A program made the translations under genes and the position numbers. Positions 1,729 to 64,000 of a stretch of DNA of 64,000 bases are shown in pieces; within the stretch, counting starts at the first letter, position 1; each line of letters starts with the position of its first letter. The stretch comes from Hemiscyllium ocellatum (taxonomy: Eukaryota): contig NC_083411.1 of the NCBI RefSeq assembly GCF_020745735.1, positions 23,395,263 to 23,459,262 of the forward strand, read 5' to 3'. The notes below the pieces were generated by a model. The model was not told the origin of the DNA and searched no databases. It was given only the letters and a program-made list of their open reading frames with translations.

Positions 1729-2220
1729 GAGAGTGGTGAGCCTGTGGAATTATCTGTCACAGAAAACAGTGAATGTTTTCAAGAAAGAGTTGAATATTGG
1801 GTGCCATGTTGGCTCAGTGGTTAGCACTGCTGCCTCACAGTGCCAAGGACCTGGGGTTTGATTCGAGCCTTGGATGACTGTCTGTTGGCGTTTCCACATT
1901 CTCCTTGTGTCTGTGTGGGTTTCCTCTGGTTTCCTCCCACAGTCCAAAGATGAGCAGGCTTGGTGGATTAGCCATGCTAAATGTAGAGTGTAGGGGTGGG
2001 ATGTGCCTGGGTTGGGATGCTCTTTGGAGGATCAGTGTGGATGCGATGGGGCAAATGGCTGCTTCCACACTGTAGGGATTCTATATAGTTCTTAGAACTA
2101 AAGGGATCAAAGATAAAGTAGGAACAGAATACTGAATTGGATCATCCATGATCATATCAAATGGTGGAACACATTCAAAAGGCGGAATTGATACTCCTGC
2201 TCACATTGTATATGTTTCTA
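1729..2220 (+). mobile_element. Old CR1 3' fragment interrupted by an HE1 SINE
   Basis: gagtggtgagcctgtggaatt (RVV.LWN) at 1731-1800 resumes at ~2085 (ttcttagaactaaagggatcaaag...tatgtttcta). Confidence 0.7.
1799..2083 (+). mobile_element. HE1-type tRNA-derived SINE
   Basis: Box A tggctcagtgg, box B-like gtttgattc, conserved core (ttctcc..gtgtctg.gtgggtttcctc), CR1-like tail cactgtagggattcta. Confidence 0.9.
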
Positions 2221-2839: not shown

Positions 2840-3140
2840 GGGGAGCTGTTGGCCAAGTGATATTGTTGCTAGAGTGTTCATCCAGAGATCAGTTAATCTT
2901 GCAGACTCTAGTTCAAATCCTGTATATGACAAATGGTGGAATTTGAATTCAATTTTAAAGTTGCTAATTAGTGTCTACCGATGGCCATGAAACCATGGTT
3001 GTGGGGGAAAAACATCTGCATAACAATGTCCTTTTGGGAAGAAAATACTGTCCTTACCTGGTCTTGTCAATACTGACCCTTAAATACCCTCTGGATTGGG
3101 CAATAAATATGAGCGTGGCTTGTGAATGATTTAAAGAAAA
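2840..3140 (+). mobile_element. Bipartite tRNA-headed SINE (5' end plus 3' tail of the LINE at 14262-18032), degraded
   Basis: Box B agttcaaatcc, ggtggaatttgaattcaat, ccatgaaaccat, gtccttacctggtc, then tail gggcaataaat. Confidence 0.75.
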
Positions 3141-14104: not shown

Positions 14105-14261
14105 ATCCTAAAACAGCTTCACTAAGAAGATAATCCTATATTTTTCACACATAAGATCTCAGGGTCAGAGCTGTTGAGTATAAATCAGACCACTTTATTT
14201 TCTTTAAGTCTTTAATCCTGGTCTTTTTTTTTCATCACATCTGGCTTCAGCTGCATTTATT

Positions 14262-17200
14262 TAATTCACTTGTGGGATGTGGGCATTGCTGGCTGGCCAG
14301 CATTTATTGCCCGTTCCTAGTTACCTTTGAGAAAGTGGTGGTGAGCTGTCCCATGAACCACTGCAGTCTGTTGACCCACAATGTCACTGGGGCAGAAGGG
14401 ATTTCCATGATTGTGACCCAGCAGCATTGAAGTGACAGTGATATATTTCCAAGTCAGGATAGTGAGACTTTGGAGGGGAACTTGCAGGTGGTGGTGTTAC
14501 CATGTAAGTCTTGACCTTATCATTCTAGGTGGGAGTGGTTGTGGGTTGGAAGATGCTCTCTAAATATCTTTGACAATTTTATGCAAAGTATCTTGCAGAT
14601 AGTGGACACTGCTACTGCTGAACATTGGTGGTGGAGGGAGTAGCTGTTTCTGGATATGATGCCAGTCAAGCGGGCTGGTAGCTCTTGGATGGCATCAAGC
14701 TTCATGAGTGCTATTGGAACTGCACCCATCCGGGCTAGTGGGCAATATTCTAGCACACTTCTGACTTGTACGTTGTAGATGGAAGACAGGTTTTGGGGAG
14801 TCAGGAGATGAGATGGTTGCCATAGTCATCCTAGCCTTTGACCTATTCTTGTAGCCACAGTGTTTATTTGGTGAATCCACTTGAGTTTCTGGTCAATGGT
14901 AACTGTGCAGGATGTTGGTAGTGGGGGTTCATTGATGGTAACACTATTGAATGTCTAGGCGGTGGTTGGATTGTCTTTTATTGGAGATGGTTGATACCTG
15001 GCATTTCTCTTGTTAGCCCAAGGCTGGATGTTGTCCATTTGAACATGGACTGCTTCAGTATCTGATGAGTTGCGAATGGTGCTGAACATTGTGCAATCAT
15101 TGGTGAACATCACTATGTCTGACCTTATAATGGAGGAAAGGTCATTGATGAAGCAGCTGAAGATGGTTTGCCCTAAGTCACTGCCCTGAGGAACTCGTGC
15201 ATATATATTTTAGAGTTGAGATGACTGATCTCTGACAACTACAACCATCTTTTCGTGTGCCAGGTATGACTCCAACTAGTGGAGAATTTTCCCCCGACAC
15301 CCTTGATTCCAGTGTTGTTAGGGCTCCTTGTTGCCGCGCTCAGAAGAATGCAGCCTTGTTGTCAAGGGCTGTCACTCTCACCTCACCTCTGGAATATAGC
15401 TTTTGTTCATTTTGAACCTAGACTATGATAAGGGCAGGGGCTGAGTGGCCCTGGTGGAATCCAAACTGGGCATCACTGAGCGGGCTATTGCTGAGCAGGT
15501 ATTGCTTGATAGCACGATTGATGAAACTTTCCATCATGATCGACAGTAGACTGATGGGGTGGTAATTAGCAGGATTGGATTTGTCCTGCTTTTTACGTAC
15601 AGGACATGCCTGAATAATTTTCCACATTGTCAGGTCGATGCCAATGTTATAGCTGTATTAGAAGAGCTTGGTGAGTAGAGTGGAAAATTCTGGAGCACAA
15701 GTCCTCAGTACTATTGCTAGAATGTTGTCAAAGCTCACAGCCTTTGCAGTATCCAGTGCCTCCAACTGTTTTTTGATATCATGTGGAGTGAATCAAGTTG
15801 GCTGTAATTCCGTGGACCACTGGAAGAGGCTGAGATGGATCATCATTCAACACTCTTGGCTGAATATTGCATCGAAAGCTGCAGCCTTATCTTTTGCACC
15901 GATATGCTGGGCTTTTCCATCATTAAGGATGATTATATTTGCGAACTTCCTCATCCAGTGAGTTGTTTAATTGTCCATCGCCCTTCACAACTGGATGTGC
16001 AGAACTGCAAAGCTTAGATCTAATCTGTCAGTTGTAGAATCACTTAGCTCTCTCTGTCACTCACAGCATATGCTGTTTATCATGCAAGTAGTCCAGTTTG
16101 GTAGCTTAATCAGGTTGACACCTCATTTTCAGGTAAGCCTGGTGTAAGTCTTGAAATGCGCTCTCCATTGAATCAGGGTTGATCCCCGGCTTGATGGTAG
16201 TCATTGAGTGGGGCCATGGGGTTGCAGATTGTGCTGGAGCATAGTCCTGCTGCTGTTGATGGTCCACAGCACCTCCTGGATTATCAGTCTTCAATTGCTA
16301 GATCTGTTCAAGGTCTATCCCATTTAGCATGGTGAAGCATGGGGTCTTCTGAAGGTGGCACTTTGTCTTCACAAGGATTGTACAGTGATCACTCTTAGCA
16401 ATCCTGACCTGACATCTGCAGCCAGCAAATCATAGCGTCATAGAAATGTACAGCATGGAAACAGACCCTTCGGTCCAACCCATCCATGCCGACCAGATAT
16501 CCCAACCCAATCTAGTCCCACCTGCCAGCACCCGGCCCATATCCCTCCAAACCCTTCCTATTCATATACCCATCCAGATGCCTTTTAAATGTTGTAATTG
16601 TACCAGCGTCCACCACTTCCTCTGGCAACTCATTCCATACACGTACCACCCTCTGCGTGAAAACGTTGCCCCTTAGGTCACTTTGATATCTTTCCCCTCA
16701 CACCCTAAACCTAAGCCCTCTAGTTCTGGACTACTGACGCAAAATACTCATTTAGTATTTCCCCCATTTTCTGCGGCTCCACACAAGGCTGCCTTGCTGA
16801 CCTTTGAGGGACCCTATTCTCTCCCTAGTTATCCTTTTGTCCTTAATGTATTTGTAAAAACCCTTTGGATTATCCTTAATTCTATTTGCCAAAGCTATTT
16901 CATGTCCCCTTTTTGCCCTCCTGATTTCCCTCTTAAGTATACTCCTATTGCCTTTATACTCTTCTAAGGATTCCCTCGATCTATCCTGTCTATACCTTAC
17001 ATATGCTTTCTTCTTTTTCTTTCGTCCTCCAGCATTCCTTGTACCTACCAGCCTTTCCTTTCACCCTAACAGGAATATACTTTCTCTGGATTCTCGTTAT
17101 CTCATTTCTGAAAGCATCCCATTTTCCAGCCCTCCCTTTAGCTGTGAACATCTGCACCCAATCAGCTTTTGAAAGTTCTTGCCGAATACCAGTAAGGATG

Positions 17201-18032
17201 AGATCAAGTTTTTTTTTCTGCCTTGTAGGTTCCCTCATTATTGGCTGCAGATCCAATCTAATAGCTATGGCCTTTAGGACCCAACCATCACGATCATTGA
17301 TACTACTTTTGACCACTCTAGGTTTGGTACATGTAACTCCCCATCCAGAGTACGTTTTGTGCCCTTGTCACCCTCAGTACTTCCCCCACGTTTTGGAGTC
17401 CTGATGCATTAGCTGAGGGAGGACAGTACGTGTTAAACAGTAGAACGTTCCCTTGACTATATTTGACCTGAAATCATGAGACATTGTGGGGTCCACAATT
17501 AATGTTGAGGACTCCCAGGGTAACTCTCTCCCAACTGTAGACAACTGTGCCAGTCTGTTGGTGGCACAGGACATATCCAGGGATGGTGATGCTAGTTTTG
17601 GGACATTGTTTATAAAGCATGACTAAGTCAAGCTGTTGCTTGACGAGTCTATGAGAATAGCTCTCCCAATTTTGACACTTAAATTAGTATGGAGGGCTTT
17701 GCAGGGTCGACAGGGCTATTTCTGCCCTTATCTTTTCTGTGTCCAGGTGATCCAATTGTTTAATTTCTTACTTGAGACTTTGTTGCAATTGATACAACTG
17801 AATGGCTTGCTAAAGCATTTCAGAGGGAAATTATGAGTCAACCACATTGCTGTAGACCAGGTAAGGATGGCAGATTTCCTTCCCCCAATGGCATTAGTGA
17901 ACCAGACAATGGTTTCATAGTCATCAGTGGATTCTTAATTCCAGATACTGTGACGAGATATGAACCTGAGTCTCCAGAACATTAGCTGAGTTTCTGGATT
18001 AATATCTAGTGATAATACCACTCTGCCATTGC
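14262..18032 (-). mobile_element. Near full-length decayed non-LTR retrotransposon (jockey/CR1 group, clade unassigned) with tRNA-like 5' head and APE+RT remnants
   Basis: EN remnants (REPTR..LDLILT), RT NPANYHPISLLS..DAQFGF..GHSA, VPQGS.LG..IFSCFINDL; box A at 18018-18028 and box B at 17956-17966 on -; 3' tail 14262-14325; CR1 insert at 16431-17190. Confidence 0.85.
16431..17190 (-). mobile_element. Internally deleted CR1 inserted into the LINE above
   Basis: 3' UTR/C-terminus 16431-16731 joined directly to the EN-RT linker (RQELSKADW..KWDAFRNEI..YIPVR) 16732-17190; RT core absent. Confidence 0.85.
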
Positions 18033-21030: not shown

Positions 21031-21194
21031 GTCACCAGTTGTACAATGTAATTCGTTACGGGGAAAAGGAAAGAACTGACATAGTGCTGGGCTAAAGGAG
21101 TCTTCTGTAGCACTGTGCAGAAAGAGTAGGAGGTGTGGTATTTCAAGTAAAAGCAAACCAGCCTCCTTGCACTAACCCAGGCCTTGGAAACGAT

Positions 21195-22400
21195 GATGAC
21201 AAACACAGCCATGTCAAGCCTGAGAGGTTCTACATGCTAACATCTGGAGACTAGTGTCAAAATTGGGAGATCTGTCTCACAGACTAGTCAAGGAACAGTC
21301 TGGCATCATTATATTCATGGAATCATAGACAGACAGGGTAGATCAGAAGGTGTTTAGTACACTTGCCTTCATTGCTCAGACCTTTGGGTATACGAGTTGA
21401 CATGTGATCTTGAGGTTGTACAGGACCAGGGTGAGGCCTCTTCTACAGTACTGTGTGCACTTCTGGTCACCCAGTTAGAAGAAGGATTTAATTAAATTGG
21501 AGAGGGTTCAGAAAAGAGCTATCAGAACTTTGGTGGGAATGGAAGGCCTGAGTTATAAAAATAGGCTGGAAAGACTGGGTCTTTTTTGACTGGAGTGTAG
21601 GAGGTTGAGGTGTGACCTTATAGAGGTTTATAAAATCATGAGGAGTATGGATAAGCTGAATGACAAGAGTTCTTTTTTCCCTATGGTGGGGGACTTCAAA
21701 ACCAGGGGGCATATTTTTCAGGTGAGATGAGAAAGATTTAAAAAGGACACAAGGGACAACCTTTTTATGCAGAGAGTGGTTCATGTGTGGAATGAACTAT
21801 TAGAGAACTTGGTGGATACAGATAAAATTATAACATTTAAAAGACATTTAGATAAGTTCATGATAGGAAACTTTTGGAGGGAGATGGGCCAAGTGCAGGC
21901 AGGCGAGACTACTTTGATTTGGGAACATGGTTGATGTGGACTGGTTGGACTGAAGGATCTGTTCCATGCTGCTTGACTCTGATATATCCCAGACACCACC
22001 ATCACCATCCCTGAATATGTCTTCTCCATCTGGTTGGGGAGAGGGGATGGGACAGTAGTGTACCATTTGGGGGCAACTACCTAGAAGTTCTCAATGTTGA
22101 CACCAGACACATTGAGGTCACATGACATCAGGTCGCACATGGACAAAAGAAAAGTGTTGAATAATGTACTGTGCCCATTTCTCACCTAACATGACCGATG
22201 AATCAGTACTCTTCCATGTTGAACACCTGGAGGAAAGCTAGGTGCAGAATATACTTTGGTTAGGGTCTTCAATGTCCATCACCAAGTGTGGCTTGGCAGT
22301 TGCATGACTGACTGAGTTCATTGATTCTGAAGGACTTGGCCAGTGGGTTTAGGTTTGCGGCAGGTGACGAAGGAACCACCAAGATTGAAAAACATATTTG
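21195..22400 (+). mobile_element. Endonuclease-region fragment of the jockey/CR1-group LINE, split by a CR1
   Basis: gtgtcaaaattgggaga..cacagactagtcaag (21255-21290) and caccatcaccatccctg..aaggaaccaccaag (21995-22385) match 17200-17680 in reverse. Confidence 0.75.
21332..21981 (+). mobile_element. CR1 LINE 3' fragment
   Basis: ggttgaggtgtgaccttatagaggtttataaaatcatg; tail gaaggatctgttccatgctg..gactct. Confidence 0.9.
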
Positions 22401-26540: not shown

Positions 26541-26578
26541 CATTCTTGATGAAGGGCATATGCCCGAAACGTCGATTC
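26541..26578 (+). ncRNA. Minimal hammerhead ribozyme motif in Penelope pLTR (C3U variant)
   Basis: ttc-TTGATGA-a-gggc(atat)gccc-GAA-ACGT-C-gatt: palindromic ACGT, GUC cleavage triplet. Confidence 0.65.
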
Positions 26579-26959
26579 CCCTGGTCCTTGGATGCTGCCT
26601 GACCTGCTGTGCTTTTCCAGTGCTGCACTCTCAACTCTGATCTCCAGCATCTGCAGTCCTCACTTTCTCCACACTATAAACTTGACTGGTTATTTTAAAT
26701 TGCTGTTAATTTGGCGTTAGCACACTCATGATTGTTCAGTAGGTGCAGTCTCTATTCATGGAATCACATCTATGTGTAAACATTTTATTTTAGGTTTTCA
26801 AAGTGTAGGCTGTGTGAATATGGTCTGTTCTCGTCCTATTATGAAGAAATGAAGAAAAATGCTGCTTGATCAATCTGCCAAACCTTGCAATATAAACCAC
26901 AAAGCCTTCAAAGTTGACTTGCGACTAACCAGCAGCTTTTTCTCTTATAAGATAAATTG

Positions 26960-28644: not shown

Positions 28645-28800
28645 GCTGTGCTCCCCACTTACAAGCCTCATTCCTGATGAAGGGCTTATGCCTGAAACTT
28701 TGATTCTCCTGCTCCTCAGTTGCTGCCTGACCTGCTGTGATTTTCCAGCATCATATTCTCAACTCTGGTCTCCAACATCTGCAATCCTCACTTTCTCCTA
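28645..28800 (+). repeat. Solo Penelope pLTR family A with hammerhead core
   Basis: attcCTGATGAagggcttatgcctGAAActttgattctcctgctcc...cactttctcc; short inverted piece gaagggtgataggtcagac just upstream. Confidence 0.85.
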
Positions 28801-34189: not shown

Positions 34190-34520
34190 AGATGGTCTTA
34201 TGGCATTATTGCTGGACTGTAGACCCCAGGTAATGATCTAGGGACCTGGGTTTGAATCCTACTACAGCAGATGGTAAAATTTGGATTCAATAAAAAAATC
34301 TGGAATTAGAGTCTAATGATAACTATTGCTAACTGTCGGGGAAAAAAACCCATCTGGGTTCACTAATGCTCTTCAGGGAAGACAACTGCTATCCTTATCT
34401 GTGACTCCAGACCCACAGCAATGTAGTTGATTCTTAACTGCCCTCTGGACAATTAGGGATAGGTAATAAATGCTGCCCAGCCAGTGACGCTCTTGTCTTG
34501 GGAATGTATAAAGGAAAAAA
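34190..34520 (+). mobile_element. Bipartite tRNA-headed SINE
   Basis: Box B ggtttgaatcc; body to ..taactgccctctg (34447) then LINE tail gacaattagggataggtaataaatgctg..cagccag. Confidence 0.85.
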
Positions 34521-38303: not shown

Positions 38304-38885
38304 GGATGGCACAGTGTCTCAGTAATTAGCACTGCTGCCTCCCAGCACCAGGGACTGGATTCAACTCCATCCTTGGGTGAATGTCTGTGTGGAGTTTGCA
38401 CATTCTCCCTGTGTCTATGTGGATTTCCTCTGGGTGCTCCAGTTTCCTCCCAGAGTCCAAAGATGAGCAGGTTTAGTGGATTGGCCATGCTACATTGCCC
38501 ATAGTATCTAGGGATGTTCAGTCTAGGTGGATTAATCATGGGAAATACAAGAATGGGGTACTGGGGTAGGTCTGGGCGGGATGCTCTTTAGAGGATCAAT
38601 GTGGACTTGATGGTCTGAATGGCCTGCTTCTAGATTAGAGTGGTGCTGGAAAAGCACAGCAGGTCAGGCAGCATCCGAGGAGCAGAAAAATTGACATTTC
38701 GGGCAAAAGCCCTTTATCAAGAATGGAGCGATGAAGGGCTATTGCCCAAAACATCGATTTTCCTGCTCTTCGGATGCTGCCTGACCTGCTGTGCTTTTCC
38801 AGCACCACTCTAATCCAGACTCTGGTTTCCAGCATCTGCAGTCCTCACATTTGCCTGATTGGTCTGCACATTGTAGGGATTCTAC
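38304..38885 (+). mobile_element. HE1-type SINE interrupted in its tail by a palindromic Penelope pLTR
   Basis: Head ggcacagtg..cagtaattagcactgctgcctc; tail ggcctgcttc (38630) resumes cacattgtagggattcta (38867-38884). Confidence 0.88.
38631..38857. mobile_element. Palindromic Penelope-terminus element (family A), two decayed hammerheads head-to-head
   Basis: Arms ~38633-38718 and ~38730-38815, 11-nt spacer; right arm extends to the pLTR 3' end (cagtcctcacatttgcct). Confidence 0.88.
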
Positions 38886-48364: not shown

Positions 48365-49625
48365 ATTCTGGAGAGCAAGAACTGATTAGGGATAGTCAGC
48401 AAGGCTTTGTGCATGGGAAAAGCATGTCTCACAAACTTGATTGAGGTTTTTTGAAGAGGTGACAAAGAAGATTGATGAAGGCAGAGCGTTAGACATTGTG
48501 TATGTGGACTTCAGCAAAGCAATTGACAATGTTCTGCATGGTAGACTGGTTAGTAAAGTCAGATTACATGGGATCCGGGGGAGCTAGCTAATTGAGTGCA
48601 AAATTGGCCTGAAGGTAGGTGGTGATAGAGGGTTGTTCTTGGCACTAGAGGCCTGTGACCAGCAGTGTACCACAAGGATCGATGCTGGGTATACTGCTTT
48701 TCATCATTTATATAAATAATTTGGATGTGAATATAGGAGGAATGGTTAGTAAGTTTTCAGATGGTGTACTAGTGTAGTGAACAGTAAAGAAGGTTATCTC
48801 AGAGTACAACAGGACCGTGATCAGATGGGCCAAGGAGTGGCAGATGGCTTTTAATTTAATGTGAGGTGTTACGTTTTGGTAAGGCTAACCAGGCAGGACT
48901 TGTACAGTTAGTGGAGGGCTCTGGGGACTGTTAGCAAACAAAGATACCTGGGGATGCAGGTTCTCATTTCCTTGAAAGTGAGTTGCAGGTAGACAGAGTG
49001 ATGAAGAAGGCATTTGGCATGCTTGTCTTTATTGATCAGTACATTGAGTGTAGGAGTTGGAATGTCATGTTGCAACATTGGTTAGGCCACTTTTGGAATA
49101 TAGCATACAATTCTGGTCACCTTGCTGCAGGAAGGATGTTGTGAAACTTGAAAGGGTTCAGAAAGGATTTACAAGAATGTTGCCAGGATTGGAGAGTTTG
49201 AGTTATAGAGAGAGGCTGAATAGGCTGGGTTTTTTTCCATCAAGTGTCAGAGGCTGCGGGGTGACCTTTTAGAGGTTTATAAAGTCACAAGGAACATGGA
49301 AAGGTGAATAGCCAATGTCTTTTTTTCCAGTGTAGGGGTGTCCAAAATTAGAGGGCATAGGTTTATGATGAGAGGGGAAAGATTTAAAGGGACCTGAAGG
49401 GCAATGTTTTCATGCAGAGGATAGTGCATGTAAGGACTGAGCTCCAGAGGAAGTGGCGGAGGCTGGTACAATTACCACATTTAAAAGACAGCTGTTTGGT
49501 TATATGAATAGGAAGGGTTATAGTGATATGGGCCAAGTTTGGCAAATGGGATTAGATTAATTTAGGATATCGGTTCGGTGCAGGCAAATTGGATGGAAGG
49601 GTCTGTTTCTATGCTGTATGACTCT
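48365..49625 (+). mobile_element. CR1 LINE 3' 1.3 kb, frameshifted
   Basis: SQQGFVHGKACLTNLIE, YVDFSKA, VPQGS, LVRPLLEYSIQFWSP; tail gggtctgtttctatgctgtatgactct. Confidence 0.92.
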
Positions 49626-62694: not shown

Positions 62695-63172
62695 ATGCAA
62701 TCAGAATGGTAATGTTTCTGAAATAGAATCCAGACACCTTGGTCAATATTCTGGAGACTGAGTTCAAATTCCACTGTGGGATGGAGATACTTAAATTCAG
62801 TGACTCAGTACATTTGGAATGATCCGAAAATAAAATACCGATCTCATTAATAACAATCCTCGGACCATCACAGTGTCCGACTCTATGATGGTTCCTGTTT
62901 TGAACTATTGTCAAAGATCAGTTGCAATCACAGTGCCTGAAACATCGATTTTCCTGCTTCTCGGATGCTGCCTGACCTACTGTGCATTTCCAGCACCACT
63001 CTAATCTTGACTCTAATCTCCACCATCTGCAGTCCTCACTTTTGTCATGAACACCTGCCTGGTTCAGCAATATCCTTCAGGGCAGGATATCTACCATCCT
63101 CATATAATCTGGCCTATATATGACGCCAGACCGATTGTAACGTGGTTGGTCCTTAATTGCCTTCTGAAATGA
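62695..63172 (+). mobile_element. tRNA-headed SINE or 5' end of its parent LINE, old copy, interrupted by a Penelope pLTR
   Basis: Box B agttcaaattcc; resumes ctggttcagcaatatccttcagggcagg..gtggttggtccttaattgccttctgaaatg. Confidence 0.7.
62933..63046 (+). repeat. Solo Penelope pLTR family A, truncated inside the hammerhead
   Basis: tgcctGAAAcatcgattttcctgcttctcggatgctgcctgacc..cagtcctcacttttgtc. Confidence 0.85.
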
Positions 63173-64000
63173 TGTAGGAAACTATCAAGTACTGGAGGAA
63201 AAAGAAATTGAAGGTGCACTTACACCATGTTGACTTTAGTGATTCAAGAACTTTCACTTTCAGTGATGTGACTTAGAAGAGTTCCAGAAGTGAAAGTCTG
63301 CATCTGTAGTACTTACCCTTGTATTATTGGAGGTTCAGGCTTTGGTAGGCACTACCAACGAAGCCTCGGTTACAACACACAGCACTATACAGAAGAACCT
63401 GTAGCCACAATAATGCATGCTGTGGAAATCCTGATCTGAACTGCTGCTCATTAACAGAAGCTAATATTGTTTTGTGAATACTGTGGCTCAACTCAATACA
63501 CTACTTGCAATCTTAGGATGCTTATGTTAGCTTAACTAAGCTTGTAATTTCAGGCAAATTTATTAAGCTGTAGGGCATGCCCTGACCTCATCCAGATGGA
63601 TGAATAAGAAGGCTGTAAGCAACCTCTGACATTGGTCACAGCAGATGCAGAACATATTTTGAATCTGTTTCCACAAGAAAGCCTCACAAATGTTAAAGCA
63701 TGCTTCATTTATTTCCAGTGGGGTGTTCAGCTTCATTGGTATGTTGATAATCAGCTTGCTGCTACTATACAATGAATAGTTTGCTTGCCCTTAACTGTGT
63801 ATCCCAAGCCACAACATTCTTTTTCTGCATTTCAGTTCACCTTTTTGAACTGAAGCAATGTTCAGGCCTTTTGAAGAAATGTCACTTAAAATAGCTTTAA
63901 ATTGTGACCACTTAGTGACATTAGTAAATAGATTTCTTGAAGGAAATTACCTGATGTCAGGGAATGACTGTCACCAAGAAAGGTGAATGGGAGTTTTGTT

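Follow-up and report, generated by a model that had tools for sequence, protein, structure and literature searches.

A decayed shark LINE whose 5'UTR apparently consists of the head and body of a local tRNA-type SINE

Background

The origin of SINE bodies and the pairing of SINEs with LINEs are long-standing open questions, and according to the accepted models a small-RNA head has been joined either to the tail of a LINE or to a LINE that had already been deleted. The bipartite pairing of Bov-tA and Bov-A with the LINE BovB was reportedly described by Okada and Hamada in 1997. Bipartite SINEs made of the 5' and 3' parts of a LINE are known from RTE and Vingi, and ORF-less bipartite derivatives only from RTE, Ingi, Vingi and R2 (PMC5786205); the LINE described here, from the shark Hemiscyllium ocellatum, instead looks L2-like and would stand outside the list of bipartite makers given by Kojima in 2018 (PMC5786205). 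Bov-tA/Bov-A with BovB and the RTE and Vingi SINEs resemble the shark pair in that the SINE has no coding region and is assembled from the 5' part and the 3' end of the LINE with which it is paired, but in the Bov-tA type a tRNA head has been added that is missing from the autonomous LINE, whereas the long shark element has the head (PMC5786205), so that the pair departs in this respect from the Bov-tA type. Similarly, in the trypanosome pairs RIME/ingi and NARTc/L1Tc the non-autonomous element is made of the two ends of the autonomous LINE and has a 5' promoter segment in common with it. This segment, Pr77, is a Pol II promoter (PMC1874656), whereas the shark head is small-RNA-like with A and B boxes.

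Among L2 elements, the active LINE ZfL2-2 has ORF2 only and depends on a 3' stem-loop (PMC4176376). Like the shark LINE, UnaL2 (with its SINE, UnaSINE1) and ZfL2-2 are single-ORF LINEs of about 3.3-3.6 kb, and a SINE is mobilised via the common 3' stem-loop; their partner SINEs, however, have the tail alone in common with the LINE, the 5'UTR of which is unrelated to the SINE, and here the shark pair differs (PMC4176376). SacSINE1 and LmeSINE1, the tRNA-Deu-L2 SINEs that are paired with L2-2_CM in cartilaginous fishes and the coelacanth, likewise combine a head of the tRNA type with a conserved body and a tail of the L2 type (PMC5499810). SacSINE1 is given as 463 bp (PMC2746220), as against about 330 bp for the shark SINE, and no published report of the SacSINE1 or LmeSINE1 head and body on a LINE was found. 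The LP-SINEs of molluscs likewise have a promoter region in common with a LINE, but they represent the converse case, as the SINE borrows the LINE 5'UTR as its head, whereas the shark LINE bears a head of the small-RNA type (PMC4758252). Full-text literature searches, motif strings included, returned no description of a LINE with the layout of a SINE at its front.

The long element

The window, by which the whole analysed stretch of 64 kb is meant, contains on its minus strand a decayed copy of a single-ORF LINE (18032-14256) that is interrupted at 17188-16430 by a nested fragment of another repeat. It is an ancient, dead, full-length copy of a LINE family, probably of the L2 clade. Its 3' end had been placed at 14262 in the preliminary description, and this boundary shifts to near 14256; no target-site duplication of at least 6 nt flanks the copy. 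It is the one headed long copy that was read as DNA (n=1). In agreement with the L2 clade, for which an ORF1 is optional, an AP-type endonuclease and an RT are encoded in one ORF, and their remnants follow each other in order. The probable assignment to L2 is based on this single-ORF layout, on the predicted stem-loop of the tail and on the tail itself, which we take to be similar to the end of mammalian L2/MIR elements.

An exhaustive profile search for full-length shark ORFs found as the nearest full-length proteins only unnamed ones with 30-35% identity, the close matches being short fragments from the whale shark (Rhincodon typus) and one fragment from Heptranchias perlo, and a word-based protein search also returned whale-shark fragments only. 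The candidates P0009 and P0033 were rejected, as they belong to unrelated LINEs without DNA similarity. Neither of two metagenome scans, one for the start of the endonuclease and one for the junction motif, gave a match. A second copy of the 5' part of the LINE lies on the plus strand at 21148-22400 and has a HER1-type fragment nested inside it (about 21331-21984); as this copy is 5'-truncated about 75 nt past the ATG and begins inside the coding leader, it is uninformative about the head.

The SINE-like front end

The LINE starts with a tRNA-like head (17956-18032, minus strand) in which box A and box B, both of which had been pointed out at the front of the LINE before, can be located 51 nt apart. 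Box A (TGGCAGAGTGG, 18028-18018, minus strand) matches TRGCNNAGTGG perfectly, and the start of the head lies about 4 nt ahead of the expected tRNA +1. There are three perfect box A matches within the 64-kb window where 0.97 are expected, and the remaining ones (1810 and 61512) are also in SINE heads, of an abundant HE1-type family. Box B (GGTTCATATCT, 17966-17956, minus strand) agrees with its consensus at 8 of 11 positions. The two boxes stand at a tRNA-like spacing, as they do in the internal Pol III promoter of tRNA-derived SINEs (SINE2), and they are recognisable in the other copies, including the short SINEs of the window. Five decayed heads and a majority sequence of 114 nt, derived from them for ARAGORN, gave no tRNA call with ARAGORN at default settings or with Rfam, and the calls obtained with relaxed settings were inconsistent. 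It is thus from the promoter boxes and the general layout that the head takes the name tRNA-like, which was used from the beginning, and the decayed heads do not match a tRNA model.

The remainder of the LINE 5'UTR is a SINE-type body (17821-17955, minus strand), delimited by a MAFFT alignment (A2) that comprises the long copy, the window copies at 34190-34520, 2840-3140 and 62695-63190, and a SINE of H. perlo (locus L004). Head and body together measure 212 nt, close to the roughly 210 nt estimated at first, and are collinear with the local tRNA-type SINE up to their end in tttccctctg at 17821, which is the breakpoint of the short SINE. Identity between the long copy and the SINEs amounts to 55-65% in the head and 70-82% in the body, and as the SINE copies compare with each other in the same ranges, the front end of the LINE is an ordinary member of the SINE family. 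Two internal deletions relative to the SINE copies are found in the body of the long copy, and a consensus of loose contig ends at 17906 reveals a piece that is missing from it. The SINE body also has a variable homopolymer after gaattca(a/g)t, which is T8 in H. perlo (L004 21755-21745, minus strand), A7 in the 34-kb copy (34293-34299) and T4 in the 2.8-kb copy; with a T-run at this place, Pol III would terminate after some 110 nt, and the long copy has lost the region.

The coding region

Head, body, leader and endonuclease are contiguous in the long copy, and a SINE tail is absent at the boundary 17821/17820. What follows had been taken for an untranslated leader of about 150 nt, a reading that has to be given up, because in a single frame this stretch is homologous to the N-terminal part of P0163, a gene model from the whale shark whose first residue is methionine (residues 7-60 against 17801-17658, 62% identity), and this frame leads straight into the endonuclease. 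The stretch at 17689-17818 (minus strand) is thus the putative ORF start with an N-terminal coding leader, which now has stops and indels. The homologous ATG (17818-17816) lies 2 nt past the breakpoint of the short SINE and the 5'UTR has about 215 nt, so that there is indeed no room for an ORF1, as had been stated. Another ATG, at 17847 inside the SINE body, was rejected as the start of the ORF, since P0163 and P0160, another whale-shark model, reach the endonuclease frame from the ATG at 17818.

Remnants of the N-terminal part of an AP-type endonuclease are found at 17189-17688 (minus strand; tblastn with P0160, P0163 and P0164, 45-54% identity), and this part is 70.5% identical over 604 nt to the ENA contig L005 (blastn), which begins within the leader. 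Beyond the nested fragment, pieces of the ORF with many stops and frameshifts cover the end of the endonuclease, a linker, the RT (about 15800-14900) and a C-terminal domain (14320-16429, minus strand). The RVT_1 match in this remainder is weak (E 0.02); identity is 55-64% to whale-shark fragments and 73% over 1085 nt to the H. perlo copy. The H. perlo entry XP_067829994.1, annotated as an 'uncharacterized protein' (L004 10001-13906), is built on fragments of the headed LINE family and is not a host gene.

The 3' end and the SINE copies

The LINE ORF closes with TAG at 14319-14317, and the 3'UTR behind it, about 60 nt long, has a predicted stem-loop. Stop codon and 3'UTR together occupy 14256-14319 on the minus strand, and this is the part in common with the SINE: in a second alignment (A3), the final 62 nt or so of the SINE align with four LINE 3' ends. 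The pair thus has the common 3' tail that marks a tRNA-derived SINE and its partner LINE. The consensus tail, in a fold common to the four LINE 3' ends, is predicted to form an outer stem around a GCUGGC/GCCAGC hairpin, with modest folding z-scores (-1.9 for the window copy and -2.05 for H. perlo). The element terminates in tgaa(t/c)gaataaa, which is followed by an A-run in some copies.

Two SINE copies of the window, both on the plus strand, have a short junction (A2, A3). The one at 34190-34520 consists of head and body up to ccctctg and then the last 62 nt or so of the LINE, and the one at 2840-3140 has the same structure in a more advanced state of decay, its tail having suffered a deletion; the jump from ccctctg to the LINE 3' end, on which the preliminary description was built, is thus seen in both. 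The short breakpoint reads ccctctg|ggcaattag, and as the SINE tail starts 6 nt before the stop codon of the LINE, the short SINE amounts to the LINE 5'UTR plus the LINE 3'UTR. A second breakpoint lies 26-34 nt further into the LINE and is found in the H. perlo SINE and in a SINE-like copy with a decayed tail at 62695-63190 (plus strand). The latter had been thought to continue like the long form, and past ccctctg it does so, but for 26 nt only (19 of 26 identical), comprising the ATG and about 8 codons. It was also considered as a 3'-truncated LINE; since the homology ends after these 26 nt, a longer SINE breakpoint fits better. In both variants, homology to the 5' part of the LINE runs up to the very point at which homology to its 3' end sets in, and the SINE is therefore without any sequence that the LINE lacks. 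Its body is the LINE 5' part and its tail the LINE 3' end, which is the composition of bipartite LINE-derived SINEs of the Bov-tA type.

Other repeats in the window

The fragment nested in the long element (16430-17188, minus strand and thus in the same orientation), of which the preliminary description made no mention, is foreign to it, being the 3' part of a CR1/HER1-type LINE with many copies in the window, the tail motif of which matches the tails of HE1-type SINEs. Such 3' fragments are by far the commonest repeat of the window (besides 16430-17188 also 1193-1479, 21331-21984, 49340-49618 and others), and the headed element and the LINE copy at 21148-22400 each contain one as a nested insert. 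Their summed depth in contigs from related species exceeds that of the host LINE by a factor of 100 to 1000, lying in the millions as against 10^4-10^5 for the headed LINE. Two copies of an HE1-like tRNA-type SINE (1800-2090, plus strand, and 61530-61240, minus strand) have a perfect box A and a CR1/HER1-type LINE tail; they represent the ordinary arrangement, in which only the tail is in common with a LINE, in contrast to the headed LINE. The SINE-like copy at 62695 contains an unrelated repeat (about 62881-63044); copies of its stretch 62934-63044 occur also at 26561-26666, 28689-28794 and 38629-38853, the last as an inverted pair.

Evidence from other species

Logan contigs of four related species, which have the locus in common at roughly 3-5% divergence, were placed on the element. 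Joints from head to tail, connecting 14312/14319 with 17831/17854, occur in every run, with 2-10 contigs in each run for each of the three joints. The SINE parts and the tail have a high summed contig depth, and leader and endonuclease one that is 10 to 100 times lower, a pattern expected from 5' truncation. No 5' part of a LINE copy was detectable in the H. perlo locus L004.

In the whale-shark model P0160, the first 14 residues are a translation of the SINE body and are followed by LINE leader and endonuclease. Their equivalent in the window is 17894-17853, and the head lies beyond the reach of this model. The whale-shark models are automatic gene predictions, possibly spliced, and were available as protein only. 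A similar short motif (tccttacctgg/gatcacctgga) occurs in the SINE body (17855-17872) and in the coding leader (17736-17750), and P0160 crosses from the one to the other, by a predicted splice or a real deletion.

Origin of the common front end

It is moderately probable that the LINE family has the head and body of the SINE for its 5'UTR and that it gave rise to the SINE when the ORF was lost. As the homologies abut exactly at both breakpoints, a deletion or a template jump from LINE to SINE is favoured over the capture of a SINE front end by a LINE, which would be less parsimonious. Of the proposal that the SINE is a deletion derivative of the LINE, it is borne out that head and body are continuous with the ORF and that the SINE is made solely of sequence owned by the LINE, whereas the direction of the deletion is favoured only. 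The order could also have been the reverse, with an older SINE onto the RNA of which the RT switched templates and thereby provided a LINE master copy with its front end. Such switching onto small RNAs and SINEs is an accepted origin of chimeric retroelements (PMC5499810; PMC5786205), and the higher conservation of the body (70-82% versus 55-65% for the head) resembles that of old conserved SINE domains, but the switch would have to land exactly on the boundary between SINE body and tail and leave not a single nucleotide to the SINE alone, and there is no reason for a pre-existing SINE to have the LINE ATG and first codons that are present in the longer SINE variant. We therefore regard the reverse order as rather unlikely, though still to be reckoned with.

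The headed copy might also be a one-off chimera of a family whose LINE, like BovB in relation to Bov-tA, has only the body in common with the SINE, the head having been gained by recombination or template switching within the body. A common body of about 140-200 nt would favour such switches, and a single headed long copy has been read at the DNA level; against this stands P0160, which joins the SINE body to the LINE ORF, although it falls short of the head, and we hold a chimera of this kind to be improbable. A chance insertion of a SINE beside a 5'-truncated LINE, which the preliminary description had named as the case that would overturn its reading, is refuted. With about one per 16-20 kb, SINEs are frequent in the window, but the missing SINE tail at 17821/17820 speaks decisively against a SINE that landed there by chance. 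Moreover, the H. perlo SINE and the copy at 62695-63190 continue in the same way past ccctctg, and only 2 nt separate the breakpoint from the start of the ORF, which together reduce the probability of a coincidence to next to nothing.

If the SINE did come from the LINE, it may, by analogy with UnaL2 and ZfL2-2, have lost the whole ORF, either through a deletion inside the element or because the RT jumped on its template, and the LINE protein would then copy the SINE in trans by recognising the common predicted 3' stem-loop, as in these same two systems. The common head would serve as an internal promoter of both elements that is carried along in each new copy.

Transcription of SINE and LINE

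The SINE promoter in the common head is almost certainly a Pol III promoter, and it is possible that Pol III is the putative maker also of the 3.3-kb LINE RNA. Internal T-runs, which had been suggested as a check because they would stop Pol III, are scarce: the sense strand has 2 T4 runs in 5,946 nt of family sequence as against 8.3 +/- 2.9 expected (P = 0.006, which is overstated because the pooled sequences are homologous), and three control LINEs have no depletion of T4. AATAAA motifs in the tail of the LINE would equally suit a Pol II transcript. It is a tentative and rather doubtful idea that the LINE is an autonomous protein-coding retrotransposon made by the polymerase of small RNAs and nearly free of T4 over 3.3 kb, and that SINE and LINE belong to a single Pol III transcription unit and differ in length.

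Significance

An autonomous element that apparently has the head itself, and the SINE of which is the LINE minus its ORF, would represent a third and simpler route to a SINE, and this in an L2-like clade that was previously not known for such derivatives. It also raises the testable question of whether Pol III can yield a translatable LINE RNA of 3.3 kb.
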